Notes: generated by a model not told the origin, from the letters alone. A stretch of DNA of 60,778 nucleotides, filler included, from Trichosphaerium sp. ATCC 40318 (GCA_038496445.1; 3 parts of 3 records of this genome joined end to end with filler, not necessarily neighbours in it), one strand, 5' to 3'. Counted from the whole stretch's first letter, positions 15,571 through 44,704 are shown. A program made the numbers and translations.

Positions 15571-15755
15571 CCCAACAAAATTAACTATAAATTCAAAAAA
15601 ACAAAAAGAACCATCCTAAAACACTTAATTTAAAAAATATAAACCGTAAAAAAAATCCATAAAAAAAAAAACAACTTACCAAAATAAAAACCAACTTGAA
15701 AACACAAACAACCTAAATTATTTACTACGGGATCAAAATGCTCCAAAACTGACAT
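15571..15755 (-). CDS. atp6: ATP synthase subunit a, 5' part (runs off contig end; cryptogene)
   Basis: ATG at 15755 gives MSVLEHFDPVV (cf. SPLEQF); downstream FFEFIVNFV in a shifted frame. Confidence 0.55.
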
Positions 15756-15829
15756 CTTTCTCTTTTCTTTACTTCTTTTATTTTTTTATTAAAATAAAAT
15801 TTAAAATAACCCTTTAAATTTTTTTAATT

Positions 15830-17525
15830 TTATCAGTTACACCTTCCGATACACTACCCTGTTACGAGTTACAGCAATCGCTGACATAGGTTTTATAGTC
15901 CTTTTTTTTATCTTTTCTACTTTTTAATTATCTTTTAAAGCAGGAGATTTACTCAACCGCTTTTAGCTTACGTTAAAAAGATAATTTAAATTTAAATTAT
16001 CTTTTTATTTCTGCCCTATTTAGTTTATTTTTCATAAAAAGTTGCTTTTCCTAAGAAAACTCTACTTTAAAATACAAACTTTTTTGATTTTTTTTTTGAT
16101 TAATTTAAACTACGTCCAGCCACCCAGCTTTCGCTGGGCCACGGCGGTATGTACGAGCGCAGGCAAGTATTCACGCGGTGTGATGATCCGCGATTACTAG
16201 CAATTCATCTTCATATTCCTATTTCAGGGAATATCCGAACAAGAGATTGTTTTATCAGACTAGCGCTAATCACTTATGAATAGCATCTTGTTGTACCAAC
16301 GTTGTATCACATTTGAAGCCAAACCATTAAGGCCATGACGACCAGTCGTCATCACTACTAACTATCATATTGCATGATTTGCTAAATTGTATTATTATTT
16401 TCACTCAATTTCATGGGTACGCCCGTTTATCCAGTAAGGCGACATATCACTACACGAGCTGACGGCGCCATGCAACACCTGGACCTAAAGTATTCTCTCA
16501 ATTTTTAATATAAATTTGAAAAAAACCTACTACTTATAAATATAACTTTATCTTGGGGCATATATCTAGGTTTGTAAGATTAAACGCGGATCATCAGATA
16601 ATCAACATGATCCACTGCTGGTAATACACTCCGCCAATTTCTTAGGTTTACATCTTGCGACATATTTCCCCAGGTGAGATATTTACGCGTAAGCTTCACC
16701 ACCGGTACAAGTCACAAAGGATTTAAAACCTCCTAGATGTCCAGCGCCAAATATCCATCGGTCACAGCGTAGATTACAAGGGTATCTAATCTTTTCACTC
16801 CCTACGCTTTCGATTACTAACGTCTATTCTTTCACAGTACGCGATTGCTCCGCATGATGGTCTTATAAATCTTAGAATTCTACTCCTAATTTATAATACC
16901 ACGTACTCAAAAAAATACAAAGACATAAGTTAAATGAGTTATCCTCAGATCAACCCGAGTTTTTTACTCAAAACTTTATGGACAGTTTACTTCCCTTTAC
17001 ACCAATCAAGATGAGTAGCACTTGGGCCCCCGTGTTACCGCGACTGCTGCACGAAGTTAGACAGCCTTTCCAATAATTACTATCACTATTATCATTATTT
17101 CACTGACTTTCGACTCTGCCTTCTTAAGCGAACAATCTTTCTACAACTGTGCTAAATTTAGCCACACGGCATAACTGGATCGTGCATTAAACTTGTCCAA
17201 AATCCCTCACTGCTGCGCCTTAACGTTCGGGTCATCTCTCCCCGCTGTGCCAGTTTACCCTCTCAGTCCTGGTACGGTCTTCGGCTAGGTAAGCTTTACC
17301 TTAAACCTACTACTTATCATTTACGATACATTCCTATGTGTCAAAAACTCGTATCTCTTTATATAAAAATTATAAATCTATTTACTTTATTAAGCTTATT
17401 TTGCTTAACATAGCTAGCTAATATCGATTAATACTCACCTTACGGGCATTCTAAATAATATAGAATATTACCTTGCATGTGTTAAGTCCACATTAGCACT
17501 CACTCAGCGCAAAATCATACGCTAA
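15830..17525 (-). rRNA. rns: Mitochondrial small-subunit rRNA
   Basis: Reverse complements of conserved SSU motifs: TACCCTGTTACGAGTT (15856), ACGAGCTGACGGCGCCATGCAACACCT, GGGTATCTAAT, TTACCGCGACTGCTGCAC (17035), CTTGCATGTGTTAAG (17472). Confidence 0.96.
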
Positions 17526-17560
17526 CTTTTACTTGTTTTTACACCAACTACCTTTAATAA

Positions 17561-17631
17561 CGAGCAAATCGGACTTGAACCGATATCTGAAAGGCCGACA
17601 ACTTCTATTTTACCTTTTAAACTATTGGCCC
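17561..17631 (-). tRNA. trnD: tRNA-Asp(GUC), needs 2 G insertions
   Basis: Anticodon loop TTGTCGG. Anticodon stem GAAG[G]/CCTTT and acceptor GGGCCAA/TTG[G]CTC+G pair fully only after G doubling. Confidence 0.9.
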
Positions 17632-17634
17632 TTT

Positions 17635-17704
17635 TTTGGATAGCAGACTCGAACCTGCACTTTTGGCTCCAAAGCCAACACTCTACCTTTTAAGTTATAC
17701 CCTG
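17635..17704 (-). tRNA. trnP: tRNA-Pro(UGG), cryptic
   Basis: CAGGGTATAACTT...; stem TTGGC/GCCAA with a 6-nt loop TTTGGA (7 nt after G doubling, giving G37); T arm GCAGG-TTCGAGT-C[C]TGC. Confidence 0.75.
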
Positions 17705-17710
17705 TTTTTT

Positions 17711-17783
17711 TTTTGGAGGCCGGACTCGAACCGATCTCCTCAAGGGTCATGAGCCTGCGAGCTAACCTATACTCCACTCCCGA
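17711..17783 (-). tRNA. trnM: tRNA-Met(CAU), probable initiator
   Basis: Loop CTCATGA; CAGG[G]/CCCTT gives the three G:C pairs diagnostic of initiator tRNA after one G insertion. Confidence 0.8.
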
Positions 17784-17785
17784 TT

Positions 17786-17865
17786 TTTCAGTGACGGGAC
17801 TTGAACCGCACGTTTTTTCAAACACAAATTTTGAATCTGACGTGTCTACATTCCACCACACTGAC
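17786..17865 (-). tRNA. trnL: tRNA-Leu(CAA)
   Basis: Long variable arm, loop TTCAAAA. D-loop AATG[G]TA and T stem GCG[G]G/CCCGT each lack a G. Confidence 0.88.
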
Positions 17866-17937
17866 TTTTTCAGGCCGGACTTGAACCGACATCAAAGATT
17901 TTGGAAACCTCTATTTTACCAATTAAACTACTGATAC
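17866..17937 (-). tRNA. trnW: tRNA-Trp(CCA)
   Basis: Stem GAGGT/ATCTT, loop TTCCAAA; T arm GTCGG-TTCAAGT-CCGGC. Confidence 0.88.
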
Positions 17938-17946
17938 CTTTTTAAC

Positions 17947-18018
17947 TTCGGGCGACAGGCATCGAACTGCAACCTTTGGGTTAAAAACCCACTGCTCTAC
18001 CTATTAAGCTACGCCCCC
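17947..18018 (-). tRNA. trnK: tRNA-Lys(UUU)
   Basis: GGGGGCGTAGCTTAATAGGTAGAGC; loop TTTTTAA; T stem GCAG[G]/CCTGT. Confidence 0.88.
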
Positions 18019-18021
18019 TCC

Positions 18022-18103
18022 CTAACGCGGTGGGATTCGAACCACGAAGAGAAAAACTCAATAAATTTACAATCTACTCCTTTAACCACTTGGATACACG
18101 TAC
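18022..18103 (-). tRNA. trnY: tRNA-Tyr(GUA)
   Basis: Loop TTGTAAA, long variable arm; T stem GTG[G]G/CCCAC. Confidence 0.88.
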
Positions 18104-18107
18104 TTTT

Positions 18108-18175
18108 GTTGGGTAGTTGATTCGAACCAACGTAACTTATTCAAAATCAAGCGCCTAACCTCTCGGCATACCCAT
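18108..18175 (-). tRNA. trnQ: tRNA-Gln(UUG), cryptic
   Basis: Loop TTTTGAA; anticodon stem CTTGA/T[C]AAG and T stem GTTGG/C[C]AAC each lack a C. Confidence 0.8.
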
Positions 18176-18245
18176 TTAGCCCAGTGGACTCGAACCCACA
18201 TCTTACAACTTATGAGTTGCTGTTTTTGCCTTTAAACTATAGTTC
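18176..18245 (-). tRNA. tRNA with CAU anticodon (elongator Met or lysidine-Ile), cryptic
   Basis: Stem GCAAC/GTTGT around a 6-nt loop TCATAA (7 nt after C doubling); T stem GTGGG/C[C]CAC. Confidence 0.75.
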
Positions 18246-18256
18246 TTTAAAAAAAA

Positions 18257-18326
18257 TATCCACGTTGGACTTGAACCAACATCGCCGAATTGAAAATACG
18301 TATCCTAACCTTTAGACGACGCAGAC
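18257..18326 (-). tRNA. trnE: tRNA-Glu(UUC)
   Basis: GTCTGCGTCGTCTAAAGGTTAGGA; loop TTTTCAA; acceptor pairs after C doubling (CCAAC[C]GTGGAT). Confidence 0.85.
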
Positions 18327-18328
18327 TT

Positions 18329-18400
18329 TGGCTCGTAACGGAATTGAACCGTTATTACACTATTTGCAATAGTATGGATTAACCGTTATCCTAACGAGCC
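18329..18400 (-). tRNA. trnC: tRNA-Cys(GCA), canonical as encoded
   Basis: Perfect cloverleaf: GGCTCGT/ACGAGCC, TACTA-TTGCAAA-TAGTG, AACGG-TTCAATT-CCGTT. Confidence 0.93.
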
Positions 18401-18402
18401 TT

Positions 18403-18482
18403 TTTCAGTGACGGGACTTGAACCGCACGTTTTTTCAAACACGAGATCTAAATCCGACGTGTCTACATTCCACCACACTGAC
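18403..18482 (-). tRNA. trnL: tRNA-Leu(UAG), near-identical paralog of trnL(CAA)
   Basis: Identical to 17786-17865 except for the anticodon arm (TCGGA-TTTAGAT-CTCGT). Confidence 0.85.
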
Positions 18483-18521
18483 TTTTTTTTCTTTTTTCCT
18501 TCTAACAAGGATTTTTTATAG

Positions 18522-18662
18522 TTGAGATTGCTTTTTTTAAATATAGATGCAGATCGTAGTTTTGTGCATCTATGGAAATATAAACAATCTTTGAGATTGT
18601 TTATATTTCCATAGATGCACAAAACTACGATCTGCATCTATATTTAAAAAAAGCAATCTCAA
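18522..18662. repeat. Perfect hairpin, about 69-bp arms, 3-nt loop
   Basis: TTGAGATTGCTTTTTTTAAATATAGATGC...AAACAATCT-TTG-AGATTGTTT...GCATCTATATTTAAAAAAAGCAATCTCAA. Confidence 0.95.
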
Positions 18663-21284: not shown

Positions 21285-21450
21285 AAAGATCCAGCGTTAG
21301 TTTTACTTGATCTTTGGCTTTAAATTTAAAGCCAAAGATCAAGTAAAACTAACGCTGGATCTTTTTACTATCTCCTCTTTATTACGTGAACGCAAGATGT
21401 TCGAAACACCAAAATACGGTGTTTCGAACATCTTGCGTTCACGTAATAAA
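21285..21450. repeat. Two adjacent unrelated hairpins (21285-21364 perfect 80-bp palindrome; 21378-21450 with 7-nt loop)
   Basis: AAAGATCCAGCGTTAG...TTTAAA|TTTAAA...CTAACGCTGGATCTTT and TTTATTACGTGAACGCAAGATGTTCGAAACACC...GGTGTTTCGAACATCTTGCGTTCACGTAATAAA. Confidence 0.95.
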
Positions 21451-23072: not shown

Positions 23073-23167
23073 ATTATTGAATGGCAAAGATTACGCAATT
23101 TAAGTTAGTAAAATCTACGACGTAGATTTTACTAACTTAAATTGCGTAATCTTTGCCATTCAATAAT
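23073..23167. repeat. Perfect hairpin, 47-bp arms, 1-nt loop
   Basis: ATTATTGAATGGCAAAGATTACGCAATTTAAGTTAGTAAAATCTACG-A-CGTAGATTTTAC...CAATAAT. Confidence 0.95.
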
Positions 23168-23299: not shown

Positions 23300-23792
23300 A
23301 TAAACTCGGCTTAAATTTTAAATTTCTAATAATTTTTCAAAAATATCATCTTTATCAATATTGCACTATCTACATAAAATAACGATAATAAAAAGACTAA
23401 ATAACACCAGTACTTTTAACAAATAGATTATTTACTTTATTTTTAATCTTAAACTAAATTCTTTAAAAATAAACATTTAACTTTTATTAAAGATACATAT
23501 CTACTGAAACACTTTTTAAAGTTCGCGATATTGTCACAATATCGCCAGTCCAATCGCGATTGGGCTGCTGCTCCTATAATTATGATGATACCTAATATAC
23601 ACCTACAGAAATATCCGTTACGACTGCAAAACCAAAGCAAGAACGTAGATTAAAACTCTAATAACTCTAAACTTATTAACATTTCTAATATACTTTGGAA
23701 GTTATTATAACCCCGATGATGTAAAAATACACAACAATAATCTAAAATTACCATTTTCTTTAATTTTTTATCTTCACATTTTTTCTACTCAT
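23300..23792 (-). CDS. rpl2: Ribosomal protein L2, N-terminal region (cryptogene, extent uncertain)
   Basis: HHRG...KYIRNVNKFR, LEF...RSC, NGYF...ILG and TGDIVTIS occur in L2 order. Confidence 0.45.
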
Positions 23793-24327
23793 TCATATCA
23801 AAATCAAACATGCGATAATCCTGTGTTAGCTCTACCGTTCATAAACTATACCTTTCCTTGATCATCATATCTCACTCATAATAACCTGTTAATGGAAAAT
23901 CCTTTCTTAAAGGAAACCTCTAAAAGTATAGTCTAATAAAATTCTACGCATATCTACATTCCCGAAAAGTATACGCCAAATAAATCTTGCGCTCTCTTTC
24001 TAACCACAAACCTGATCTAAAAATTTTACACGATGTAAATAAACTACCTCTTTTTTTATATGCAAAACCTTCTAATCTTATTCTACGATTTTAAATAAAC
24101 TTGAAAAAACGTAAGCTACCTTCAATTTACAGCAGCTGCACTATTATCTACACAAAAATATCTAACAATGATTTTCAGCATGCGCTCACTTAATTTTAAC
24201 CAAAAAAATAAAAACCACAAATCGCCATATCTTTACAAGATCCTATAAAAGTTCTTAAATATGTCCAAAAGATTTAATAAAAGACCTAAAATAAATTCAA
24301 AAGCAAAAACTCTCTAATTCAACGCAT
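23785..24327 (-). CDS. nad9: NADH dehydrogenase subunit 9 (cryptogene)
   Basis: Six single-base doublings give [78 protein letters not shown]. Confidence 0.93.
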
Positions 24328-24329: not shown

Positions 24330-25293
24330 TTAACCTAAAAAACTACCATATAAAATTACTTACCTCCCAAAGCTATTCACTATTAAACAATAAAACCCTA
24401 CCGTTATAGGTAACAAAGTTTTTCACCTAAACTCATTAAATGATCATATCTATATCTAGGTAATGAAGCTCTAACCAAATAAACATAAGCATTATTAATA
24501 AACTTTTAATATACAAAAAATAGGAATTCCTTCCACAAATCATTATAAAAAAAAATATTTCGCCAAGAAATAAATTGGCAAACAAAATACTTAATATAAT
24601 CATGTTTATATATCAGAAAGAAAAAAACAAACAAAACCCATGAAGAATATTCAACATTATAACAGACACTAATTCACCTTCTGCCTCTGGTAAATCTGCG
24701 AAAGGTGGCCTATTAGTCTCTGCTAATATTGTCACTATAAAAATTATTGCCGCTCAGGCGCATATAAAAATAAAATAGTATCTTTTGTAAATTAACTACA
24801 CTTATAAGATTTAACGTACCTGCTCAAGCACCAATATAATAATAACTAAACCAAAAGGAACTCATAAGAAATCATTTGGGCAGCAGCTCTTATTGCACTA
24901 AAAAAGCATATTTTGAGTTACTTGCCCAACCCGCAAAAATTAAACATAAACACCTAATGACGATATAACAAATATCAACATCAAACTATATCTATATCTA
25001 TGATTACATTTTAAAAGACAAAGGTAATAAGGATAAAAGAACTAAGATAAAAATAACAACCACAAGGAGCAAAAACAAATAAAATACCATAGCGTATTGA
25101 GGAATTATTGTTTCTTTTCAAATCATTTCAACCCATCAGCTATGGCTGTAATAAACCATATAAACCTACTACATAGGTCCTTTCCTTCTTTGATACCAGC
25201 CATAACTTTTCTTTCCATAAAGTTAATAATGCTCCGCAAAAATAAACGGAAACATTAAAATAATAAAATAATAAACTTTAAAATAACTAACAT
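24330..25293 (-). CDS. nad1: NADH dehydrogenase subunit 1 (cryptogene)
   Basis: [72 protein letters not shown], all in successively shifted frames. Confidence 0.94.
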
Positions 25294-25503
25294 TATTTTA
25301 TTAATATATTTAAAATTACTAAAAAACAAAAAAAATAAAATAAAGAACTTAATTTATTTTTAATTTCGCTTCTTCCCTTGAAACTATAAAAAATTATAAA
25401 CAAATAACTATCTTTTTTAAATATTCATTTATAATACAAATAACATTCTTTTTTTTCAAAATTTACACACTTTTCTTATTTTTTTACTTAAACTATAAGT
25501 AGT

Positions 25504-26574
25504 TTAAGTAAAAAAATAAGAAAAAAATTCATATATATTTCCCAGCATGTTGGTTATAAAATAATAAAAATCAACGCCTTTTTCATAAAATCATTCGCTT
25601 CATCTGTTTTCTATTTCTTTATCTAATATTGATAATTTTTTTTTTATTGCCTCTTTTATTATTGATCTAGACTTAACAATCCCTCATAATATATCTTGCA
25701 GTAATCCATATTTTTCTAAAAGCTTTGCCCATAAATCACGTCGGGCCTCTAATAGCGATGCATTATTCTCCACAAATCTATGCATTTGATCCTTAAAATA
25801 CTTGGACAGTTTTCCTACATCTGTAGCTTGCCAGTCAAAAACTTCTATCAAATCATATAAATTTTTTTTTATTGCTCTTAAATTTTCTAAATCTAAGGTT
25901 TTTATGTTTTCTTTAGTATTAAAATAAGCAAATAATTCTTCTAATTTCAATTTCAGACTATTTATACAGACGTCTATATAACACACTACATTTTTTTTAG
26001 ATAATGCTGAAACACTGTTTTCTAAATAAATTTTTAAATTTTCACTGTTATACAATTCTCACTCTTTTATTCAATCAAAAATTTTTTCTAATCCTTCTAT
26101 ATTTTCTCCTTCTATATTTTCTCCTTCTATTTTTTCTAATCCTTCTATATTTTCTCCTTCTATATTTTCTCCTTCTATTTTTTCTAATCCTTCTATATTT
26201 TCTCCTTCTATTTTTTCTCCTTCTATTTTTTCTAATCCTTCTATATTTTCTCCTTCTATTTTTTCTCCTTCTATTTTTTCTACTCCTTCTATTTTTTCTT
26301 CTTCTATTTTTTCTCCTTCTATTTTTTCTACTCCTTCTATTTTTTCTTCTTCTATTTTTTCTTCTCCTTCTATTTTTTCTCCTTCTATTTTTTCTTCTTC
26401 TTTCTTTTCTCCTTCTATATTTTTTTCTCCTTCTTCTGATGCTGATCTTCTATTTACTACCACCATCACGCCTACTATTACTCCTATAATACAAGTGGCT
26501 GCAAAACCAAAACCTATGTCTACATACCCAATACCTCCCACAGCTAACGCCATAGGATCCATTCCTCATAACAT
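25504..26574 (-). CDS. Unassigned 356-aa mitochondrial ORF, uninterrupted in code 4: N-terminal TM segment plus acidic (IEGEK/IEGLEK) repeat
   Basis: With TGA=Trp, the track ORFs 26071-26562 and 25684-26055 join in frame from ATG 26574 (MLWGMDPMALAVGG...) to TAA 25504-25506. No frameshift is needed. Confidence 0.8.
26080..26440 (-). repeat. Coding minisatellite of 15/18-bp units (ATAGAAGGAGAAAAA, ATAGAAGGATTAGAAAAA)
   Basis: About 20 degenerate tandem units encoding IEGEK/IEGEN/IEGLEK/IEGVEK. Confidence 0.92.
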
Positions 26575-26679
26575 AATAACATTTTTTTTTTGCTTTTTTA
26601 TAACATTGTTATAAAAAAGCAAAAAAAAAATCGTTAATATTCATATAAAAAATATTATAAAAATTAAAATTAAAAATAA

Positions 26680-26961
26680 ATTATAACTAATAATTAATGT
26701 AAAAAAAAAAACCCTAAACCTACAAAATCAAATATTTATAAATATCACACTTTCCACAATATTTCTCTTTTATTTATATTTTGAACCCAACATTATAAAT
26801 ACCAAAAGAACCTATTCACTCTAATATACTTTTTCCATTAAATTAAAACTATATTTATAAGAAAACAAATAAAAAACTATACCTATACTTGCTCCTCCTA
26901 CACCGACAGTACATACTCCTGCTGCTAATACTTTTGCTGCTAATACTATTTGTCATTCCAT
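26680..26961 (-). other. Chimeric atp9(5')::nad5(3') reading frame
   Basis: 26961 to about 26878 encodes MEWQIVLAAKVLAAGVCTVGVGGASIGI, near-identical to atp9 at 36082. It continues directly into VFYLFSYKYSFNLMEK[G]ILEWIGSFGI, which resembles the Nad5 C-terminal motif Y..SF..LDKG.IE.LGP.GI. Confidence 0.7.
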
Positions 26962-26989
26962 TTTTTTTTTACTCTTTTTTAAAATTTAT

Positions 26990-29063: not shown

Positions 29064-29126
29064 TTTGGGGTGTTTTTTTTTACTTTTTTTTATATTTTAA
29101 TTAAACAGGGGGAAAAGAAGGGAGAT

Positions 29127-29226
29127 AACTTTGATTTTTTTTAAAAAGATTAATTGAATATCTTTTAGAAATAACCAAATTTTTCTAAAAGATATTCAAT
29201 TAATCTTTTTAAAAAAAATCAAAGTT
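29127..29226. terminator. Hairpin overlapping the stop codon of the 468-aa ORF (mirror copy about 43255-43354); possible processing or terminator structure
   Basis: AACTTTGATTTTTTTTAAAAAGATTAATTGAATATCTTTTAGAAA...TTTCTAAAAGATATTCAATTAATCTTTTTAAAAAAAATCAAAGTT. The function is inference. Confidence 0.45.
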
Positions 29227-31879: not shown

Positions 31880-33337
31880 ATAGGCATCTTCATAAGAGTA
31901 TACAATATAAAATATAAAAACTCTCCTATAGACATAAAATATAACATAAAATAAATAAAAATAAACACAGATAGTAAATAACGCCCAACAGAACATCAAA
32001 AATTTAAAGCAACATAAGCATCTGGATAATCACTATCCTTCTGGGCATACCCGCCATCCTAACAAATGCATTGGCAAAAAAGTCATATTTACTCCTATAA
32101 AATTTCCCAAAATTGTAATCTTCCTATAAAATCGGATATTTTTTTCCAAACATTAAAGAACTTCAATGATAAAACCCGCAAAAATTCCAAACACAGAACT
32201 AAAGATAAAACATAATGAAAATGAGCAACACATAATATGTATCATGCAATGCTATATCTAAAACACGTTTGCTAAAATAATACCAGTTACACTCCAAAAC
32301 TAAACATTAGTACAAATCTGCAGCATAAAATAGCGGAACTCTTCATTCTACTATACAAACATTATTGTTGATAACAACCAAAAACTTTAACCCTGAAGGC
32401 ATTGCTATTATCATAGTTACTGTCATAAAATATACCTCGTATCATCATCTAAACCCGCTGTAAACATATGATGACTCATACAATAGATCCTAAAACTGCT
32501 ATACATACCATGCATAAACCATAGAATCATGACATAAACCTCTTTATAAGTTCAACAGAAATTACTACACTAGTTATACAAAAGCTGGTAATATTAATAT
32601 ATAAACTTCTGATGTCCAAAAAATCAAAAAATATGTGATATAAAACAGGATCTCCACCTCCTGTGGATCAAAAAATGTTGTATTAAAATACGATCTGTTA
32701 TTAACATAACTAAAGCTCCTCTAAAACAGGTAATGTCAATAATAATAATACCGCTGTTATATAAATGATACTGCAAACAACCAATTCTATAAGTATCCAT
32801 AATCGCATATTCATTATAGTTACCATAAAATTTATTGCACCGATATTGATGAAATTCCGGCTATATGCAACTCAAAATACAAGCATCTATGACATTCCAG
32901 GACTAGCCTTAATACAGAAAGTAATGGATATAAAGTTCATCCTGCTCTGCACCATCTCCTATAACAAAGATCACATTAATAATAATAAAGAAGGCGCAAT
33001 AATCAGAAACCTAAATTATTTACTCTTGGGAATGCATCTCCGGGGCCCCTAAACTTAATGAACTATAAAATTACCTAAACCCCTATTAATAAAGGCATAA
33101 CGAAAAAAAAAATCATTAATAGACATGCGCTGTTACGATTACATTATAAACTTGTTATCTTGAACCAAAATTAACGGACAGGCATTCCTAATTCTATACG
33201 TATTATCATGATAATATAGTTCCCATACTCCTCCAAAAAAACTTGCTCATATATATAGCATCCTATATCTTTATGATTTGTTGAACATGACCACTCTTAA
33301 TGTAACATAAATATTGATAAAAACTTAATAAATACAT
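31880..33337 (-). CDS. cox1: Cytochrome c oxidase subunit 1 (cryptogene, copy 1; 3' end approximate)
   Basis: KRWSCSTNHKDIG, YNVIVTAHG, GAPEMAFPRVNN, GAGAGWTLYP, FFDPTGGGDPVLY.HIFWFFGHPEVYILILP, HDTYYVVAHFHYVLSLG and GMPRR after repeated single-base insertions. Confidence 0.96.
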
Positions 33338-33489
33338 TATTTTTAATTTATAATATACTTTTTATTTATTAAAAATCTTTTTTTTCTCTACTTTTATTAA
33401 AAACTTAATTAATGGAATCTAGTCAAAAAACTACCTTATATATATTTTTTTTACAGTTGTAAAAAAAATATATATAACATTATTTTACA

Positions 33490-35950
33490 ATATTTTTTTT
33501 ACTACCATATTTAATCCTGATATTGAATCATAAATATAAATTAAAATTAGCAGATTCTACTTATATGTTATCAGCAGTTCCTTTTTCGCACGTAGCTTTA
33601 ACGCCAACCGGAACGTAAAACCGATAACGCTACCACAAGCGGTGCACCCTATTACCATAACGCCTCTCTCGTACTGCATTGGGCTCTAATTTTAATTTTT
33701 ATCACAGCAGATAGGGGCAAACTGTCTCACGACGTTCTAAACCAGCTCACGTACCTCTTTAAACGACGAACAGTCGTACCCTTGGGAGCCTACTCCCCCA
33801 GGATGAGATGAGCCGACATCGAGGTGCCAAACCGCTCGCAGATAAGAACTCTCAAAGGCAATAAGCTGTTATCCCTGGCGTACTTTTATCCGTTTGCGGA
33901 TGCCCTACCTGTAAGCGCATCCGGAAAACTATGACGACTTTAAATCCCTGTTAACCCTTTCAAGCTTACAGTCAGCTAAAATAAAAACCATATGCACTAC
34001 GGAACTTTAACGTCCTGAATTAGCCTTTGTACACTCCGTTACCTTTTAGGGAGCTTCGCCCCAGACAAACTATCCACCATGCATTTTTAATTTCTACTAA
34101 GATTAGATTTTTCCAACAAAAAATCAATATCCACTGACGGCTCCTTAAATGACCTAAACCATTAAATCATACCTCTTGATTATACTGTGTTTTTGCTTTC
34201 CTTAACCCATACAAGGTTTTAGTAAAGTGCACAGGGTCTTCCGTCCCGCTGCAATTTTTTCGCATCTTCACGAAAACTTCAATTCACTAAAATAACACTT
34301 GAGACAGTAGAAGAGTCGTTACGCTTCATGCAGGACTACAATTAATAGCTAGGAATTTCGCTACCTTAAGACGTCAAGGATTACGGCCGCGTTTACTGCT
34401 GCTTATATTCATTGCTTTTAAACAAATCCTTTTCACGATACAGCACGGGCAGGCATCGAACCTATACTTCATATACTATTTAGCAGGGTCCTGTGTTTTA
34501 GTAAACAGTCGCTCTTCTCTGTTCCGCTTCCCCCAAAATACTTCTTAAAAATAAATTATTTTCACTTTTAATTTATTTTAAAAAACAATATTTTAGGTAC
34601 CTATCTCCCGAAGTTACTGAGTTATTTTGCGAGTTCCTTAAGCATTATTCTTCTATTACTTATTGTTCTACAACTAATTACCTGTGTCGGTTATTGGTAC
34701 GTTTTTTTTTTTTATTTTTTTCTTGTAAGTTACAAAAAAATTGATATTTTACGATTACAATAACTATTTTTTGTAATTAAATTTCTATAAAATTGCTCTG
34801 AATATAACTAATATAACCTTAGTCGGAATCTTACAAACACATTCCCTTAAGGACCGCTAACCCTTATCTGTTTAACATAGATAAGGAAACCTTAATCTTT
34901 CGTAATAATGTTTTTACATATAAAGCTACTCATGCAACATTTATACTATTGATATTTTAACCAAACTCACGTACAGTTTTTTACATACAATACATCTGCT
35001 ACCAAATTAATTCTATAGCTTCGCAAATAATTTAGAGCCCCTTACATCATGACGCTTAAAAAACAATACGTGAGCTTTTACGCATCTTTAAAGAATGGCT
35101 GCTTCTAGCCCATCTCCGCTTTTATTACGTCTTTCCAGTTGATTATTATTTAAGGGCTTAGCTTATAGTCTGGGCTTTTTCCCTCTCGACTAGAATCTTC
35201 GCACCTAAGTCTTTCTATACTTTTTTATTTTTATAACATCTTGGTTTCACTATACCCGTAAATAACTTAGTTACTCCGGAATAATATTAGTGCCATACTC
35301 TACAAAATCAAAATACGCTTGCTTAAACAAGTTTCGCAGAAAACCAGCTATCACCAAGTTTGATTAGCTTTCACTCCTAACCAACACTCATCGAGCCTCT
35401 TGCAACAGACACCGGTTCAGCCAAAAACTTGGTGTTGTTAGATCACTTGGTTTCGGTCATATTTTTTAGACTTTACAGATTTACTCTTTGCTTTCACTAC
35501 GCCTCCCTTAAAGTTAAGCTTGCTCAAAAATATACTCATTGGCCCATTATACAAAAGTACGCTGTCATATCTTTTTTATACTCCAACCGTTAAAGTATTA
35601 AGTTCATTTCTTTTCAACTATCCCTACGATATCTTTTTCAACTTCCTTCACAGTACTTTTACACTATCGGTTATAAAAAAATTCTTACTTTAGCAGCAGG
35701 CACTGCCTATTCGATTTTCTCTACTTAAAAGAACTCAACGCATTTGTCACCATACTAACGTTTCTACACGATGTTTTTTTTATAGGTACTGAGATGTTTC
35801 ACTTCCCTATTTTTATTTTTCTATTTTAAAAATTTAAAAAGATACCTAAAAATCATAGCATTGTACTACTCAATTAAGTTTTCGCTTTATTAAAGCGTCT
35901 TTTTTTTGATACCTAGTAATCCCTTAATACTTAATATATAATAAAAGTAA
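33490..35950 (-). rRNA. rnl: Mitochondrial large-subunit rRNA (copy 1, ends approximate)
   Basis: Reverse complements of GGAAGTGAAACATCTCAGTACC, GGTAGCGAAATTCCT, GGGATAACAG and GCACCTCGATGTCGGCTC. Confidence 0.95.
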
Positions 35951-36081
35951 AAACTCTAATAGAAAACTTTTACTTTTTTTTACTCTTTAAATTAATTAAA
36001 AAATTTAAAGATTTAAATAAAAAAAAAAAATAAAATCCCCTATACTAACAGATTTTTTTATATAGAAAAAAAAAAAAAAAA

Positions 36082-36356
36082 ATGGAAATGACAAATAGAT
36101 TATTAGCAGCAAAAGTTTAGCAGCAGGAGTATGTACTGTCGGTGTGGAGGAGCAAGTATAGGTATAGGTAAAGTTTTTGGAGGTTTATTAATAGCAGTAT
36201 CTAGAAATCCTGAATTAGAAGCTAATTTATTAGAACAGCACTTTTAGGTTTTGCTTTATCTGAGGCGATGGGTTTATTAGTTTTATGATGTCTTTTTTAA
36301 TTATGTATACTAGTAAAAAAGACATCATTAAAAGGATAGTTTATTTTTTATATTAG
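36082..36356 (+). CDS. atp9: ATP synthase subunit c, single copy in the centre of the inverted repeat (frameshifted; local read quality doubtful)
   Basis: LLAAKVLAAGVCTVGVGGASIGIGKVFGGLLIAVSRNPELEANL.RTALLGFALSEAMGLL..MMSFLIMYT, with the RNP loop and catalytic Glu. Confidence 0.92.
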
Positions 36357-36529
36357 TAGAATATCGCATATATTCTTTGTAGTTTGTTTTTTTTTTTTTT
36401 TTTTTTCTATATAAAAAACATCTGTTAGTATAGGGGATTTTATTTTTTTTTTTTATTTAAATCTTTAAATTTTTTTATTAATTTAAAGAGTAAAAAAAAG
36501 TAAAAGTTTTCTATTAGAGTTTTTACTTT

Positions 36530-38990
36530 TATTATATATTAAGTATTAAGGGGATTACTAGGTATCAAGAAAAAAGACGCTTTAATAAAGCGAAAACTTT
36601 AATTGAGTAGTACAATGCTATGATTTTTAGGTATCTTTTTAAATTTTTAAAATAGAAAAATAAAAATAGGGAAGTGAAACATCTCAGTACCTATAAAAAA
36701 AACATCGTGTAGAAACGTTAGTAGTGGTGACAAATGCGTTGAGTTCTTTTAAGTAGAAAATCGAATAGGCAGTGCTGCTGCTAAAGTAAGAATTTTTTGA
36801 TAACCGATAGTGTAAAAGTACTGTGAAGGAAGTTGAAAAAGATATCGTAGGGATAGTTGAAAAGAAATGAACTTATACTTTAACGGTTGGAGTATAAAAA
36901 AGATATGACAGCGTACTTTTGTATAATGGGCCAATGAGTATATTTTTGAGCAAGCTTAACTTTAAGGGAGGCGTAGTGAAAGCAAAGAGTAAATCTGTAA
37001 AGTCTAAAAAATATGACCGAAACCAAGTGATCTAACAACACCAAGTTTTTGGCTGAACCGGTGTCTGTTGCAAGAGGCTCGATGAGTGTTGGTTAGGAGT
37101 GAAAGCTAATCAAACTTGGTGATAGCTGGTTTTCTGCGAAACTTGTTTAAGCAAGCGTATTTTGATTTTGTAGAGTATGGCACTAATATTATTCCGGAGT
37201 AACTAAGTTATTTACGGGTATAGTGAAACCAAGATGTTATAAAAATAAAAAAGTATAGAAAGACTTAGGTGCGAAGATTCTAGTCGAGAGGGAAAAAGCC
37301 CAGACTATAAGCTAAGCCCTTAAATAATAATCAACTGGAAAGACGTAATAAAAGCGGAGATGGGCTAGAAGCAGCCATTCTTTAAAGATGCGTAAAAGCT
37401 CACGTATTGTTTTTTAAGCGTCATGATGTAAGGGGCTCTAAATTATTTGCGAAGCTATAGAATTAATTTGGTAGCAGATGTATTGTATGTAAAAAACTGT
37501 ACGTGAGTTTGGTTAAAATATCAATAGTATAAATGTTGCATGAGTAGCTTTATATGTAAAAACATTATTACGAAAGATTAAGGTTTCCTTATCTATGTTA
37601 AACAGATAAGGGTTAGCGGTCCTTAAGGGAATGTGTTTGTAAGATTCCGACTAAGGTTATATTAGTTATATTCAGAGCAATTTTATAGAAATTTAATTAC
37701 AAAAAATAGTTATTGTAATCGTAAAATATCAATTTTTTTGTAACTTACAAGAAAAAAATAAAAAAAAAAAAAAACGTACCAATAACCGACACAGGTAATT
37801 AGTTGTAGAACAATAAGTAATAGAAGAATAATGCTTAAGGAACTCGCAAAATAACTCAGTAACTTCGGGAGATAGGTACCTAAAATATTGTTTTTTAAAA
37901 TAAATTAAAAGTGAAAATAATTTATTTTTAAGAAGTATTTTGGGGGAAGCGGAACAGAGAAGAGCGACTGTTTACTAAAACACAGGACCCTGCTAAATAG
38001 TATATGAAGTATAGGTTCGATGCCTGCCCGTGCTGTATCGTGAAAAGGATTTGTTTAAAAGCAATGAATATAAGCAGCAGTAAACGCGGCCGTAATCCTT
38101 GACGTCTTAAGGTAGCGAAATTCCTAGCTATTAATTGTAGTCCTGCATGAAGCGTAACGACTCTTCTACTGTCTCAAGTGTTATTTTAGTGAATTGAAGT
38201 TTTCGTGAAGATGCGAAAAAATTGCAGCGGGACGGAAGACCCTGTGCACTTTACTAAAACCTTGTATGGGTTAAGGAAAGCAAAAACACAGTATAATCAA
38301 GAGGTATGATTTAATGGTTTAGGTCATTTAAGGAGCCGTCAGTGGATATTGATTTTTTGTTGGAAAAATCTAATCTTAGTAGAAATTAAAAATGCATGGT
38401 GGATAGTTTGTCTGGGGCGAAGCTCCCTAAAAGGTAACGGAGTGTACAAAGGCTAATTCAGGACGTTAAAGTTCCGTAGTGCATATGGTTTTTATTTTAG
38501 CTGACTGTAAGCTTGAAAGGGTTAACAGGGATTTAAAGTCGTCATAGTTTTCCGGATGCGCTTACAGGTAGGGCATCCGCAAACGGATAAAAGTACGCCA
38601 GGGATAACAGCTTATTGCCTTTGAGAGTTCTTATCTGCGAGCGGTTTGGCACCTCGATGTCGGCTCATCTCATCCTGGGGGAGTAGGCTCCCAAGGGTAC
38701 GACTGTTCGTCGTTTAAAGAGGTACGTGAGCTGGTTTAGAACGTCGTGAGACAGTTTGCCCCTATCTGCTGTGATAAAAATTAAAATTAGAGCCCAATGC
38801 AGTACGAGAGAGGCGTTATGGTAATAGGGTGCACCGCTTGTGGTAGCGTTATCGGTTTTACGTTCCGGTTGGCGTTAAAGCTACGTGCGAAAAAGGAACT
38901 GCTGATAACATATAAGTAGAATCTGCTAATTTTAATTTATATTTATGATTCAATATCAGGATTAAATATGGTAGTAAAAAAAATATTGTA
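36530..38990 (+). rRNA. rnl: Mitochondrial large-subunit rRNA (copy 2, ends approximate)
   Basis: GGGAAGTGAAACATCTCAGTACC (36669), GATAGCTGGTT, AAGGTAGCGAAATTCCT, CAGGGATAACAG, TTTGGCACCTCGATGTCGGCTC, GAACGTCGTGAGACAGTT. Confidence 0.95.
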
Positions 38991-39138
38991 AAATAATGTT
39001 ATATATATTTTTTTTACAACTGTAAAAAAAATATATATAAGGTAGTTTTTTGACTAGATTCCATTAATTAAGTTTTTAATAAAAGTAGAGAAAAAAAAGA
39101 TTTTTAATAAATAAAAAGTATATTATAAATTAAAAATA

Positions 39139-40600
39139 ATGTATTTATTAAGTTTTTATCAATATTTATGTTACATTAAGAGTGGTCATGTTCAACAAAT
39201 CATAAAGATATAGGATGATGTATATATATGAGCAAGTTTTTTTGGAGGAGTATGGGAACTATATTATCATGATAATACGTATAGAATTAGGAATGCCTGT
39301 CCGTTAATTTTGGTTCAAGATAACAAGTTTATAATGTAATCGTAACAGCGCATGTCTATTAATGATTTTTTTTTTTCGTTATGCCTTTATTAATAGGGGT
39401 TTAGGTAATTTTATAGTTCATTAAGTTTAGGGGCCCCGGAGATGCATTCCCAAGAGTAAATAATTTAGGTTTCTGATTATTGCGCCTTCTTTATTATTAT
39501 TAATGTGATCTTTGTTATAGGAGATGGTGCAGAGCAGGATGAACTTTATATCCATTACTTTCTGTATTAAGGCTAGTCCTGGAATGTCATAGATGCTTGT
39601 ATTTTGAGTTGCATATAGCCGGAATTTCATCAATATCGGTGCAATAAATTTTATGGTAACTATAATGAATATGCGATTATGGATACTTATAGAATTGGTT
39701 GTTTGCAGTATCATTTATATAACAGCGGTATTATTATTATTGACATTACCTGTTTTAGAGGAGCTTTAGTTATGTTAATAACAGATCGTATTTTAATACA
39801 ACATTTTTTGATCCACAGGAGGTGGAGATCCTGTTTTATATCACATATTTTTTGATTTTTTGGACATCAGAAGTTTATATATTAATATTACCAGCTTTTG
39901 TATAACTAGTGTAGTAATTTCTGTTGAACTTATAAAGAGGTTTATGTCATGATTCTATGGTTTATGCATGGTATGTATAGCAGTTTTAGGATCTATTGTA
40001 TGAGTCATCATATGTTTACAGCGGGTTTAGATGATGATACGAGGTATATTTTATGACAGTAACTATGATAATAGCAATGCCTTCAGGGTTAAAGTTTTTG
40101 GTTGTTATCAACAATAATGTTTGTATAGTAGAATGAAGAGTTCCGCTATTTTATGCTGCAGATTTGTACTAATGTTTAGTTTTGGAGTGTAACTGGTATT
40201 ATTTTAGCAAACGTGTTTTAGATATAGCATTGCATGATACATATTATGTGTTGCTCATTTTCATTATGTTTTATCTTTAGTTCTGTGTTTGGAATTTTTG
40301 CGGGTTTTATCATTGAAGTTCTTTAATGTTTGGAAAAAAATATCCGATTTTATAGGAAGATTACAATTTTGGGAAATTTTATAGGAGTAAATATGACTTT
40401 TTTGCCAATGCATTTGTTAGGATGGCGGGTATGCCCAGAAGGATAGTGATTATCCAGATGCTTATGTTGCTTTAAATTTTTGATGTTCTGTTGGGCGTTA
40501 TTTACTATCTGTGTTTATTTTTATTTATTTTATGTTATATTTTATGTCTATAGGAGAGTTTTTATATTTTATATTGTATACTCTTATGAAGATGCCTATG
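39139..40600 (+). CDS. cox1: Cytochrome c oxidase subunit 1 (cryptogene, copy 2; 3' end approximate)
   Basis: ATG 39139 MYLLSFYQYLCYIK-AG[G]-TGG gives the conserved RW.STNHKDIG; same motifs as copy 1. Confidence 0.96.
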
Positions 40601-41344
40601 AGATTTAGTTGAAGATTACTTTTTAACAAAAGAGAGATCTTATTTTTAAAGATAATTATAATTTTGGTGAGGATAAAGTTAGAAGTTTAAATGGTGTATT
40701 AGTCTTTAACTGTTTTTATTTTTTCGTGTTAAATCCAAATACAGGAATTTTGAGTGTGCAAGTATACCTTTGAATTATGTAAGAAAAGGATTGATGGTGT
40801 ATCTACTCATTATTTGGTGCTAATATTAATTTAATGTTATATTTATCTAGAAAGTATAATAAGGTTTTTTTAAATGGTTTTGTAGTCATAGATAGTTGAA
40901 GTTAAAAAAATTTGTATAGTGAAAATAGATAGAAAATCTCTACGCTACTCTTCTTTGATTATTTAGTTTTTTTAAATTTTATTAGCGTCTTTTTCTTTCG
41001 TTTTTATGATCTTATAAAGTTTTTATTTTAAATTTTATTTAAAAGGTTTAGTTTTAGAGTGCGTGTTTTTAAACATATAAGAAATTACGTAGATAAATTT
41101 ATTTTTAGGTCATTTTTTATATCTTTTTAGTATGATTTAATTTATATAAAAGTTTATTATAGAAAATTATAATATGTTTTAGTATATATCTTATATACTA
41201 AATAATTTTGCGCATATTTTTTGCTTTATAAAAAGTTCATATATATAGGAAAATAGGATTGTGCATCCACAAATTTTAATGAACTAAAAATAGGAAAAGT
41301 ACGTGAAGAGAAGGAAAAAAGGATTACTTTATTATGATTAAGTT

Positions 41345-41731
41345 ATGAAAAATTTTATTTTAGTTGGTGTAATATTAAAAAGTAAGGAGCAATTTCAGTA
41401 AATTTATCTGCGTTAGGGGGCTTTGTAGACGAAGGGTAGTAGAATATGTTTTAACTTAGGTATATCGCCTTGCGAAAATTTGAGCAATTGGAATTTTAGG
41501 AAAGGGATGATTTTAAAGTATTATCTTTTTTCTAATTATTATTTAGGTGAAAGGTTATGTGAGAATTAAAAAATATATAAGAAGATATACAGATCTTATA
41601 GTAATAGAGGTTAAAGTTACTAAGTGGTTTACCTGTAAATGTCAACGAAGTAAGACTATGGTAAAACATCAAAATCTTTTAAATTGTGAAGACAAAAGAA
41701 TTTGGAACCAAAATTTCAGATGAAATTATAA
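41345..41731 (+). CDS. rps13: Ribosomal protein S13 (cryptogene, copy 2)
   Basis: GGT TTA CCT GTA AAT G[G]T CAA CGA AGT AAG ACT A[A]T GGT AAA = GLPVNGQRSKTNGK. Confidence 0.85.
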
Positions 41732-41909
41732 ATGGTAAAATAAAAAATAAAAGAATAACTAAAAGACGTTTAAGAAAAAAAAAAGAAAAAGAAAAAGAAG
41801 AAAAATAAATATATTTAAAGTATATATGCAGTGTATTTTGTGTAGTGTAATAGAGTAATTTATATAGGTATTGTTAAGTTTAAAATATAAAAAAAGAAGA
41901 AAAATTATC

Positions 41910-43316
41910 ATGTTTAATTTTGTAATATTAAAGAAATATGTAAAAAGTGAGCTCCTATCATTTTTGGTTCTTTGGTTTGTATTGAATTCAATACATTACA
42001 TGGCGGGGTGTTTTATAAGTGTTTTTAAATTTTATTTTTTATTTAGTAAAGAATTAGTATTTTATAATAATCCTTTTTTTAAAGAAGATTTGATAAATAA
42101 TTATGCTTTATTAGCGAAAGGGAGGGTTCATTTTTTTGAATGGTTAAGCTTCGAGGGGGGAGGCTTAACCTTAACGTTCTTTAATGAAGAAAAAAGCAGA
42201 GAAGAAATAGTGGATAAGTTAGACAATTTAGTACCTATAGATCCAACAGTGGTAGCAGATCTATATACGCAACTAGCTAGCCAAGGATATAGTTTAACTT
42301 GAAGCTATAGTGCGTTTGCTTCTATGATCTTATGATTAGTTATGTGTTCTATTTATTATCATTTTTTTATTAATTCTATGCTTAATTTAGAAGAAATAAA
42401 TAATTTTATTCTATTTATGCAAAATGATAAAGAGTTTATAAAAAAAAAAAATAGTAGATCATATAGGTGAAATTGAGCAAAGTCAAGATGCTGATTTTTT
42501 TAATTTTGTAACTTATACTTTAGAAAACGAAGGAATAATAATAGAAGAAAGTAATTTGTCAGTTATGTTTGAGAATTTAAGCTGAGTAGAATTTATAATT
42601 GAAAATTATGATATAAGTGAAAAAAATGTAAATTTAATAGTAGAATTAAAAAAAATAATGTTAGAAAAAAAAAAAGCAATGGAAATAGATAAAGAAAATT
42701 TAATTGAACAAACTACTAAATATTTTGAAAATCAGCTAGATATTTTTTTTAATTATTTAACAAATACTTGTGTTAAACATAACGTTGATTTAAGTATTGT
42801 GCAAGATTATCCTAAATGAAAAGAATTTATAAAAAAAAAAAGAAAGGTGAAGAATTAGCAGATTTAGAGAGTAGTTACAGTGAAAACATTCATGATGCTG
42901 TTTTAAATTTTTCTAAAAATTATGAAGAGAATTTACGTAACTATTACGAAAATTTATGAAGAGATATTAAAAAGGATGAACTTGTTTGATGAATGGATTG
43001 ATATACTATAATAGATAGTATAAATGAAATTTGAAAAGATAAAATTATAAGCATGCTTGAAAAAGAAAGAGAGTTCGTTTTTATAGAAACTTTATATTCT
43101 TTTTTAGATTTAATTGTTCTTGACAAATTAGTAACTTTTGCAAGCTTTGGGGAGACTTTTTTTATACTTCCTATTTTATGAATAAGTTTGTCTCCTGTAA
43201 ATTTTGATAAATTTGTTAATTGACATTATGTATTTTTTACTTGACTTTTTAAAAAACTTTGATTTTTTTTAAAAAGATTAATTGAATATCTTTTAGAAAA
43301 ATTTGGTTATTTCTAA
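41910..43316 (+). CDS. Unassigned 468-aa ORF (copy 2)
   Basis: Mirror of 29165-30571; two compensating poly-A length differences (about 42445 and 42835) are probably consensus errors. Confidence 0.75.
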
Positions 43317-43417
43317 AAGATATTCAATTAATCTTTTTAAAAAAAATCAAAGTTATCTCCCTTCTTTTCCCCCTGTTTAATTAAAATATAAAAAAAAGTA
43401 AAAAAAAACACCCCAAA

Positions 43418-44704
43418 ATGTGAGAATCAGAAATGGTAGGTATAAAGCGATTAATCGAGTAATTTTGGTACCGAGTGGCGAACAGCAATCCAAGGTTTAG
43501 ATGTATTAATTTAAATTTACCAAGATTATGTTATTTTGAAAAATTAGGAATATTGGGAACTGCAGATTATGTTTAATAGAGACAACTAGAACGTCTAATT
43601 AGAAATAGCATGTAGTGTACCTCTAGTATCAGGTTTAGTTATAAGAAAATATCTTTAAGATAGAGATTGCTAGAGAAAATGTAATGGAATATTTACTATG
43701 TAATCATCCGTTGGATTGTCCAATTTGTGATCAGGCGGGTGTTGTGATTTACAAGATATTTCTTTTATTTTTGGGATGATAGAGGAAGATACATGAAAAA
43801 AAAAAAAGTCAGTATTAGGTTTTTTTGTTGAGAATTAACAAGCACATATATGACAAGTGTATTCAGTGTGCTAGTGTGTTTTGTTTAGCTTAGAAGTATT
43901 TGGTAGTTTTGGTTTAGTTTTTTAGGTCGTGGCATGTTTTTAGAATTAGTACGTATAGAGAAAAAATAATTACGGAGAATTAACAACAAATTTTATAGCA
44001 GTATGTCCTGTAGAGCATTTACCTTGAAGCCTTTTGAGTTTGCGTCTAGAAAATGGGAGCAGTTGTTCAGGATACTTTAGATGTTAATGATGTGTTAGAG
44101 GAAATTTAACAATGATGTAATTTTTATATATATAGTTCGAACTAAAGCAAGTTAAATGAATTTTAATATAGAATGATTAACTAATAAAGCAAGATTTGCG
44201 TTTACAGTTTTTATTTTAAACGGTTATGGGGATGTAGATTTAGTTTTTTTGACAAGAAAATAGAGAAAAATAAGATCAACTCATATAAGCGTAAGTTGAT
44301 CTTATTTAATCTCATGATGGTTATGACTATACAAATCGTTAAATTTTACATTTTAGTATAAGAGTAGTTTTGATATTAAAGTGTAAATAGCATTAGAAAT
44401 TTTATGAATAATATAGGAGTGTAATAACAGATTGTATTGTGTAAATTATAACAAATATGGTATTTTATTTGTGAATTGATTTCGAAATTGCTTTGTTTGA
44501 TTGCTTTTTTATATGTTTTCTGATATTCGTTTAGAATTGCCTTTATTAGGTTACTGATTAAGAAAGTTTGATTTGAAAAACTAATGAAATATTTTACTGT
44601 TGGTTAGGTGTAAAGTCTATATACTTAGGTGTAATAATATAGGCTGTACTATAAAGAATTATTATATTTAGCTTTGGTGTAGGCGCTAATTGTAAAGAAA
44701 GGTT
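43418..44704 (+). CDS. nad11: NADH dehydrogenase subunit 11 (cryptogene, copy 2, truncated by contig end)
   Basis: [11 protein letters not shown] at 43702-43735; ATG ACA AG[G] TGT ATT CAG TGT GCT AG[G] TGT GTT at 43850. Confidence 0.92.

Follow-up and report, generated by a model that had tools for sequence, protein, structure and literature searches.

Among described mitochondrial editing systems, those of the heterolobosean amoeba BB2 and of Physarum come closest to the one examined here. In BB2, 475 mononucleotide insertions (84% G, 7% A, 5% C, and 3% U) have been reported, always beside an identical base (Yang et al. 2017, PMC5421314). The mRNAs, the rRNAs, and half the tRNAs of BB2 are edited, the two rRNAs together hold 40 sites, the unique sequence amounts to ≈70 kilobases (kb), and a polymerase "stutter" has been proposed as the mechanism (PMC5421314). 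A 2025 overview lists heteroloboseids alone for this neighbor-copy type of editing (PMC12710240), and the Heterolobosea use the universal genetic code (PMC7900873). In Physarum, the inserted bases are mostly C, some of them match a neighbor, and dinucleotide insertions and C-to-U changes also occur (PMC5421314, PMC3285571). Here, we analyze a mitochondrial contig piece (positions 15571–44704) of Trichosphaerium sp. ATCC 40318 (GCA_038496445.1), in which the rRNA genes and nearly all recognizable protein genes very probably lack single bases that are present in their RNAs. The window is the whole stretch of 60,778 nucleotides (nt), three records joined with filler, from whose first letter all positions are counted. 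A first-pass annotation of the sequence had predicted extensive insertional editing of mRNA, rRNA, and tRNA, with mixed insertion of G and C, and had suggested that the system might be independent and undescribed.

To compare RNA with DNA, we used public sequencing runs. The sequence is present in 20 of them, labeled as seven different organisms and as marine and other metagenomes; a 21st appears solely as a member of the same study. The contigs of four runs (X1, X3, X5, and X18) were aligned over 37000–42999. X18 is a documented RNA-Seq cDNA library, X5 is guessed by a tool to be RNA, and X3, which comes from another study with another labeled organism, is guessed to be DNA. Over more than 3 kb, the X18 and X5 contigs show zero substitutions relative to the window; they differ from it by extra bases only, never by deletions. 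Record 16 of X18 has 909 nt where 39881–40760 has 880 nt of DNA, with 29 gaps and no other letters, and record 15 gains 10 bases over 39571–39865 (295 nt). In X5, record 29 gains 14 bases over 39849–40275, record 30 gains 50 over 40250–41765, and record 28 contains 32 gaps. In both X18 records and in X5 records 29 and 30, there are exactly as many gaps as bases gained. The large subunit (LSU) rRNA gene, rnl, behaves in the same way, with 5 to 12 extra bases per 170 to 440 nt in X18 records 9–12 and X5 records 24–27, and ≈40 extra single bases over 37134–38610. In all, ≈130 insertions fall in 4.6 kb, or about one per 35 nt (≈1/30 nt in mRNA and ≈1/37 nt in rRNA).

The X3 contigs, by contrast, carry the uninserted form. 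At each of the 12 insertion sites that were itemized, the depth supporting the inserted base in X3 (depth_with) is 0 at a depth of 9 to 28, and X3 records 20–22, which span 40558–41386 apart from small breaks, match the window with neither gaps nor substitutions in a stretch that is densely inserted in X5 record 30. Records 17–19 of X3 belong to a relative that has diverged by 5 to 14% and that is likewise uninserted; over 472 nt of rnl in which the RNA has nine insertions, for example, it differs by 32 substitutions and shows 0 gaps. No DNA-form contig carrying inserted bases was seen in X3. Run X1 holds both forms, the uninserted one at ≈700-fold word depth, and X5 assembled only edited contigs over cox1. 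Mature RNAs therefore contain bases that are absent from the mitochondrial DNA in rnl, in cox1, and in the gene that follows it, as the first-pass annotation had predicted for these cryptogenes and as the comparison of cDNA with DNA that it proposed bears out.

Because the RNA contigs are inserted and the X3 contigs are not, sequencing error, a decayed nuclear copy of mitochondrial DNA (NUMT), and translational recoding are excluded as main explanations. A NUMT, or pseudogenized mitochondrial DNA whose RNA counterpart derives from an intact genome elsewhere, has nothing specific in its favor, although separate loci for RNA and DNA are formally conceivable. Decay would give insertions and deletions alike, whereas over 3 kb are free of substitutions and differ by +1 insertions only; the depth of the uninserted form in X1, the lack of an inserted DNA-form contig in X3, and the equal involvement of the rRNA genes also speak against it, and we regard it as very improbable. 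Recoding is a still weaker candidate. In Perkinsus mitochondria, reading frame is restored by ribosomes that shift or bypass, and unedited mRNAs read in this manner would be compatible with frameshifts that are numerous and all in one direction. The extra bases, however, are physically present in RNA-seq contigs and occur also in untranslated rRNA, which leaves this explanation with a negligible probability.

Having located the extra bases, we asked which bases they are. Of 171 indel rows, 12 were itemized, every one of them in rnl: G at 37154, 37174, 37537, 37638, and 38732; A at 37233, 37387, 37477, 37553, and 37667; and C at 37570 and 37616 (five G, five A, and two C). Each of the 12 insertions repeats a base that is encoded next to it, an outcome with a chance expectation below about 1e-4 as calculated from base composition. 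The insertions convert G to GG, A to AA, C to CC, and GG to GGG; most adjoin a lone base and not a homopolymer, and missing bases are almost never found in long A/T runs. Several insertions restore universal rRNA sequence; GAGCUGGGUUUAG at 38732 and AAAGAAUGCG at 37387 are examples. The claim of mixed G+C insertion thus gives way to a spectrum of G, A, C, and probably U, each copying its neighbor, and the related observation that lesions fall mainly in G/C runs holds only in part, since A and G are equally frequent at the itemized rRNA sites and U is predicted in atp9.

Sites deduced from protein alignments are consistent with the same rule. Among 24 unambiguous cox1 sites, the base would be G at 14, A at five, T at three, and C at two; the 14 at which G is the sole neighbor duplicate that restores the reference residue all give Gly or Met, and at Pro and Asn sites a second C or A restores the residue. 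The motifs singled out in the first-pass annotation, GHPEVY in cox1 at 39862 and TRCIQCARC in nad11 at 43850, both read as it stated, the latter after two G duplications. GG dinucleotides are depleted in the edited genes, with an observed/expected ratio of 1.07 versus 1.64 in unedited cox1. Whole-alignment scores discriminate weakly between neighbor-copy and non-neighbor models (1326 versus 1314 and 1178 versus 1168). Across 29 sites within 37154–40603, the base after a duplicated purine is usually a pyrimidine (mostly A/AT(G) for A and G/GT or G/GC for G), and the base after a duplicated C is a purine; with so few sites, the trend is weak and not statistically secure.

The base spectrum also bears on whether this could be editing of the Physarum (myxomycete) type, which is cotranscriptional and inserts mostly C with some dinucleotides and C-to-U changes. 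The insertion density in Physarum is similar, so that ≈1/30 nt in mRNA and ≈1/37 nt in rRNA fall within its range; all RNA classes appear to be affected here as well, and the sense strand is C-poor. Yet C accounts for only two of the 12 itemized sites and two of the 24 cox1 sites, the latter being mostly G, and the absence of substitutions from the RNA contigs leaves no C-to-U change in cox1. All 12 itemized insertions copy a neighbor, which is true of only some Physarum sites (PMC5421314). We consider editing of this type very unlikely, if slightly less so than a NUMT.

To follow the frameshifts through the protein genes, we used a custom protein-to-DNA aligner in which a codon can be completed by one inserted base, with frameshift penalties of 6 to 10. 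The Cox1 references were intact proteins from three metagenome loci (L002, L003, and L004) with ≈68% nucleotide identity to the piece. With L002 and L003 as references, the full 546-residue Cox1 aligned to the right-arm cox1 copy with 43 "+1 base" corrections at penalty 10 and 50 to 61 at penalties of 8 to 6, and with at most one shift in the opposite direction. For the cox1 DNAs of L003 and L004, which are unedited, the same procedure returned two to four shifts at penalty 10. In each interval of cox1, the RNA gap count equals the number of shifts that the aligner predicted, so the two approaches agree independently. Five conserved Trp residues of Cox1 align with TGA, and no in-frame TAA or TAG occurs there, which upholds the earlier reading of TGA as Trp. 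A scan of metagenome DNA with a cox1 pattern that tolerates an inserted base recovered only unrelated, unedited cox1 genes at 67 to 70% identity.

On the minus strand, a search with 70 reference proteins (from Escherichia coli, L003, and L012) and six locally shuffled controls extended this picture. The nad1 gene scored 497 with 23 shifts, the best shuffle reaching 155, and nad9 scored 251 with 12 shifts, against 136 for its controls. The N terminus of nad11 reached z = 3.8 with 16 shifts, and tblastn finds a Nad11 motif at the same place (28258–29010). The score for nad4L was marginal, although E. coli NuoK and the L012 Nad4L independently gave the same spot. In atp9, four shifts are needed. 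Of the gene list in the first-pass annotation, cox1, nad1, and nad9 gave clear signals and nad11 a weaker one; of its other members, rps2, rps13, rpl14, and atp6 did not rise above the shuffled controls with the E. coli and L012 references, nor did nad6 and rps7.

Sequencing or assembly error is a further rival explanation. The piece contains a large inverted repeat of uneven quality. The arms are 99.7% identical and are separated by a unique center of ≈300 nt that holds atp9. They differ at ≈25 small sites (≈0.3% of positions), many of them homopolymer lengths, 10 of which cluster in the first 450 nt of rnl beside the repeat center and two of which break the 482-codon open reading frame (ORF) in the right arm only. 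At 39218 and 40860, the two substitution positions with contig coverage, contigs from other runs support the left-arm base. Together with the ORF broken in the right arm only, this indicates that the right arm holds assembly errors; the inverted repeat itself may be a foldback assembly artifact or chimera. The argument that the same bases are missing from both arms, used earlier against error, is correct as to the identity of the arms but weak as evidence for these two reasons. A noisy long-read assembly that drops bases would account for such arm differences, and it could also be read into the presence of both forms in X1. The arm differences, however, are ten times rarer than the frameshifts, the missing bases avoid the long A/T runs, and ORFs of 421 and 482 codons are intact. 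The uninserted form is moreover reproduced exactly by X3, from a different study, and by the diverged relative. We judge error to be as improbable a cause of the missing bases as a NUMT.

The remaining RNA classes were assessed from the DNA. The small subunit (SSU) rRNA lacks one C in each of two universal motifs, GTGC-AGCAG of the 530 loop (17032–17052) and CCGCC-GT of the 1400 region (16139–16156), suggesting that this rRNA is edited as well. A tRNA at 17635–17704 has a 6-nt anticodon loop and is recognized, as Gln or Pro, after duplication of a loop base and never after a deletion, which points to tRNA editing. Single-base variants across the whole tRNA region were set aside as evidence: insertions and deletions alike give borderline tRNA calls there, and only the 6-nt loop is specific. 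The forecast that all RNA classes are edited is therefore confirmed in RNA for mRNA and LSU rRNA and rests on DNA motifs for SSU rRNA and tRNA.

Other features of the tRNA cluster stand apart from these. Two 87-nt tRNA-Leu-like genes on the minus strand (17784–17870 and 18401–18487) are 93% identical and have the anticodons CAA and UAG; neither is called from DNA by ARAGORN, and one is called after a single base duplication. Within 17559–17937 on the same strand, tRNA-Trp, tRNA-Met, and the Gln/Pro-like tRNA are mismatched only at acceptor pairs 1 to 3, with A on the 3′ side. These mismatches resemble acceptor-stem tRNA editing of the Acanthamoeba type, which would be a second kind of editing. 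The tRNA-Trp anticodon is CCA, although TGA is used for Trp.

Not every reading frame in the piece is interrupted. The two long open ORFs noted in the first-pass annotation are present under code 4 with 421 and 482 codons. The 482-codon ORF sits between densely edited genes, and the X5 contig that covers it (41820–42999) has only four gap letters at a depth similar to that of the edited contigs; from a comparison of the two arms, we take these four to be right-arm homopolymer errors. Since every contig that X5 yielded over cox1 is inserted, the one over the ORF is most likely RNA too, in which case the ORF is transcribed but unedited. A homology search with its first 144 residues found no homologue, Pfam gave nothing significant for either ORF, and exact-protein look-ups with the open ORF returned no match. 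The 421-codon ORF shows no sign of frameshifts. It contains, at 25985–26497, a 15/18-nt tandem repeat that encodes an acidic EKIEGE-type repeat.

The atp9 gene offers a comparison between edited and intact forms of the same sequence. Just upstream of the 421-codon ORF, a fragment on the minus strand (26877–26980) reads MEWQIVLAAKVLAAGVCTVGVGGASIGI, 28 residues identical to the N terminus of an intact Atp9 (P0001) encoded on two metagenome contigs of a relative (L010, 1775–2008; L011, 1628–1861). This relative is 78 to 80% identical in atp9, uses TGA for Trp, and carries ORFans of its own (301–427 codons) that are unrelated to those of the window; it represents a lineage without editing either in atp9 or altogether. 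Searches with Atp9 recovered metagenomic relatives only. The fragment looks like a fossil of the predeletion state or an acquisition from an unedited lineage. The gaps in the functional atp9 align exactly with bases that are present in the fragment and in the relatives, and the four would be filled by copies of U, G, U, and A or U. At the first of them, ancestral GTATTA has become GT-TTA, which a T copy turns into GTTTTA, still Val-Leu. As this codon pair is synonymous and not ancestral, editing restores the frame, not the ancestral base. The site fits an origin of editing sites by tolerated single-base deletions. The diverged X3 lineage retains the uninserted DNA form over 37783–39876 with almost no indel differences, and on this account editing sites appear to be conserved between related lineages.

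As for mechanism, co-transcriptional stuttering appears to be the most economical, by analogy with BB2: at defined positions, the mitochondrial RNA polymerase or a factor that travels with it would read a single template base twice while transcribing. The sites themselves would have arisen as single-base deletions in the DNA, tolerated where a neighbor copy gives an acceptable product. Site recognition is presumably local, since the 482-codon ORF lies beside densely edited genes and yet its contig from the RNA run is free of such insertions. Insertion after transcription, directed by guide RNAs or site-specific proteins, would suit the precise sites with no obvious shared motif, and the escape of the adjacent ORF equally demands some form of site recognition. 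But a templated guide would not be restricted to copying neighbors, X5 holds only edited contigs over cox1, and, in a search confined to the 29-kb piece, no antisense match to 29 edited sites exceeded a wrong-base control. We regard guided insertion as unlikely, though it is the strongest of the competing explanations.

Several considerations weigh against our interpretation. The library kinds of X3 and X5 are guesses made by a tool; RNA is documented for X18 alone. The aligned records are assembler contigs, not reads, and say nothing about editing efficiency or rare unedited forms. The base spectrum and the claim that dinucleotides are not inserted rest on the 12 itemized sites plus deduction, and at 17 of 45 cox1 sites the reference residue is best restored by a base other than a neighbor, which may reflect real sequence differences or misplaced shifts. 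Editing of SSU rRNA and tRNA is a prediction from the DNA. Stuttering is borrowed from BB2, and the present data do not bear on timing. Taking these points into account, we are confident, short of certainty, that this is genuine mitochondrial DNA whose rRNA genes and nearly all recognizable protein genes lack single bases every ≈30 to 37 nt, that the RNAs are filled in by copies of neighboring bases, and that stuttering is the probable means.

The layout of the piece is summarized in Table 1. Under code 11, the piece holds only six ORFs of at least 100 residues. Rfam identifies one bacterial-type SSU rRNA and two LSU rRNA copies, and ARAGORN finds four tRNAs. GC skew on the plus strand is strongly negative until ≈35.6 kb and positive thereafter, so the sense strand is G-rich and C-poor on either side of the repeat center. 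The densely edited region after cox1 is not obviously either cox2 or nad6. Five long perfect palindromes (18522–18662, 21285–21364, 23073–23167, 27192–27314, and 29127–29226, the last with a copy at 43255–43354) have arms of 40 to 69 nt and loops of 0 to 10 nt. Those that can be judged are intergenic, for example at the junction of the 482-codon ORF and nad11, and they may serve as processing or transcription punctuation. Rfam gives weak matches to plant microRNA precursors for those at 18522–18662 and 21285–21364.

Table 1. Features of the mitochondrial contig piece, in window positions.
Feature	Positions	Strand	Remarks
Mitochondrial contig piece	15571–44704	both	72% A+T, zero N
SSU rRNA (rns)	16107–17530	-	Rfam
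tRNA-like cluster, ~10 genes	17559–18487	-	4 recognized by ARAGORN
nad4L cryptogene, probable/tentative	23482–23739	-	two references, just above shuffles
nad9 cryptogene	23774–24305	-	12–15 single-base insertions needed
nad1 cryptogene	24348–25302	-	23–26 single-base insertions needed
421-codon ORF	25507–26769	-	open under code 4
atp9 5′ fragment	26877–26980	-	one frame, 104 nt, unframeshifted
Inverted repeat, left arm	27775–36083		better-quality copy
nad11 N-terminal part, left-arm cryptogene	28258–29010	-	gene extends toward lower coordinates
482-codon ORF, left-arm copy	29168–30613	-	open under code 4; 13 TGA=Trp codons
cox1 cryptogene, left-arm copy	31822–33358	-	42 shifts at penalty 10
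LSU rRNA (rnl), left-arm copy	33495–35946	-	Rfam
atp9 cryptogene	36084–36320	+	in ~300-nt unique center; 4 single bases missing versus fragment and relatives
Inverted repeat, right arm	36389–44704		runs to edge of piece
LSU rRNA (rnl), right-arm copy	36527–38981	+	Rfam; RNA contigs aligned here
cox1 cryptogene, right-arm copy	39121–40657	+	43–50 predicted insertions
Densely edited gene(s) after cox1, no name	40660–41800	+	+50 bases in RNA contig X5 record 30 (40250–41765)
482-codon ORF, right-arm copy	41868–43313	+	homopolymer indels break it into three
nad11 cryptogene, right-arm copy	43470–44704	+	cut by piece edge; contains TRCIQCARC site 43850

Neighbor-copy insertional editing had been described in one organism, BB2, in 2017, and a search of the literature found no report of this editing in the present organism and none of another BB2-like system. 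The editing follows the BB2 rule and is therefore not new as a type, which settles one half of the suggestion that the system is independent and undescribed; on the other half, the use of TGA for Trp, set against the universal code of Heterolobosea, leans toward a lineage other than that of BB2. A broader proposal, which we put forward tentatively and at slightly less than even confidence, is that a protist outside the Heterolobosea with TGA read as Trp evolved neighbor-copy editing independently, or kept it from a very deep ancestor, at the highest density of the type (≈1/30 nt, plausibly more than 1000 sites per genome). If so, the unedited ORF, the unframeshifted atp9 fragment, the relative with an intact atp9, and the 14% diverged relative would be built-in controls on site recognition.

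That a second lineage edits in this way, at about four times the density and with a wider range of bases, shows that the phenomenon is not a one-off, and a comparison of the two systems can reveal its essential features. Edited genes beside an unedited ORF, an atp9 that is edited here and intact in a relative, and sites that appear to be conserved in a lineage diverged by 5 to 14% are contrasts that bear on how sites are recognized and how they originate, and they provide material for testing both site recognition and a constructive-neutral origin of the sites. Standard annotation and barcoding fail on such a genome, since its cox1 cannot be read from the DNA; the host is apparently marine, judging by the marine metagenome runs, and such organisms may be missed in marine surveys.

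Set beside other systems, the piece shares with kinetoplastids the presence of cryptogenes whose frames are restored in RNA. Kinetoplastid editing, however, involves U only, includes deletions, uses guide RNAs after transcription, and leaves many partly edited transcripts, none of which is seen here, the search for guide-like matches being confined to the piece. In calcaronean sponge mitochondria, too, the inserted bases join runs of the same base (Lavrov et al. 2016, cited in PMC12710240). That system is reported to insert U alone, in existing short U tracts, whereas G, A, and C are inserted here. In the P gene of paramyxoviruses, the added base copies an encoded neighbor, as it does here, and both can be explained by a polymerase that reads a template base twice. 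The virus does so at one site per genome, within a slippery A(n)G(n) tract, where the number of added G varies and accuracy is modest, whereas the piece has well over a hundred precise single insertions in 4.6 kb, mostly beside a single base. With Physarum and Didymium, it shares dense insertions in mRNA, rRNA, and probably tRNA, genes that are unrecognizable in the DNA, and accurate editing; it differs in that C is a minority, all itemized insertions copy a neighbor, and there are no substitutions.

The closest likeness is to BB2. Both systems insert mononucleotides that match an adjacent encoded base, without substitutions; both use all four bases (U here on the evidence of protein alignments), with G the commonest in mRNAs; both edit mRNAs and rRNAs, and here tRNAs probably; and in both at least one ORF is unedited. 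Both genomes are AT-rich (70% in BB2 and 72% here) and have a large inverted repeat, which here may be an assembly artifact. They differ in density, ≈1/30 to 1/37 nt here against ≈1/150 nt in BB2 by arithmetic from the published figures, or about fourfold, and ≈40 sites lie in 1.5 kb of rnl alone here, as many as in both BB2 rRNAs. G makes up 84% of insertions in BB2 but five of the 12 itemized rRNA sites and ≈14 of the 24 unambiguous cox1 sites here, where A is common. TGA encodes Trp here, unlike in the universal code of Heterolobosea (PMC7900873), and BB2 was grown at 42 °C in axenic medium, whereas the sequence of the piece occurs in marine metagenome runs.

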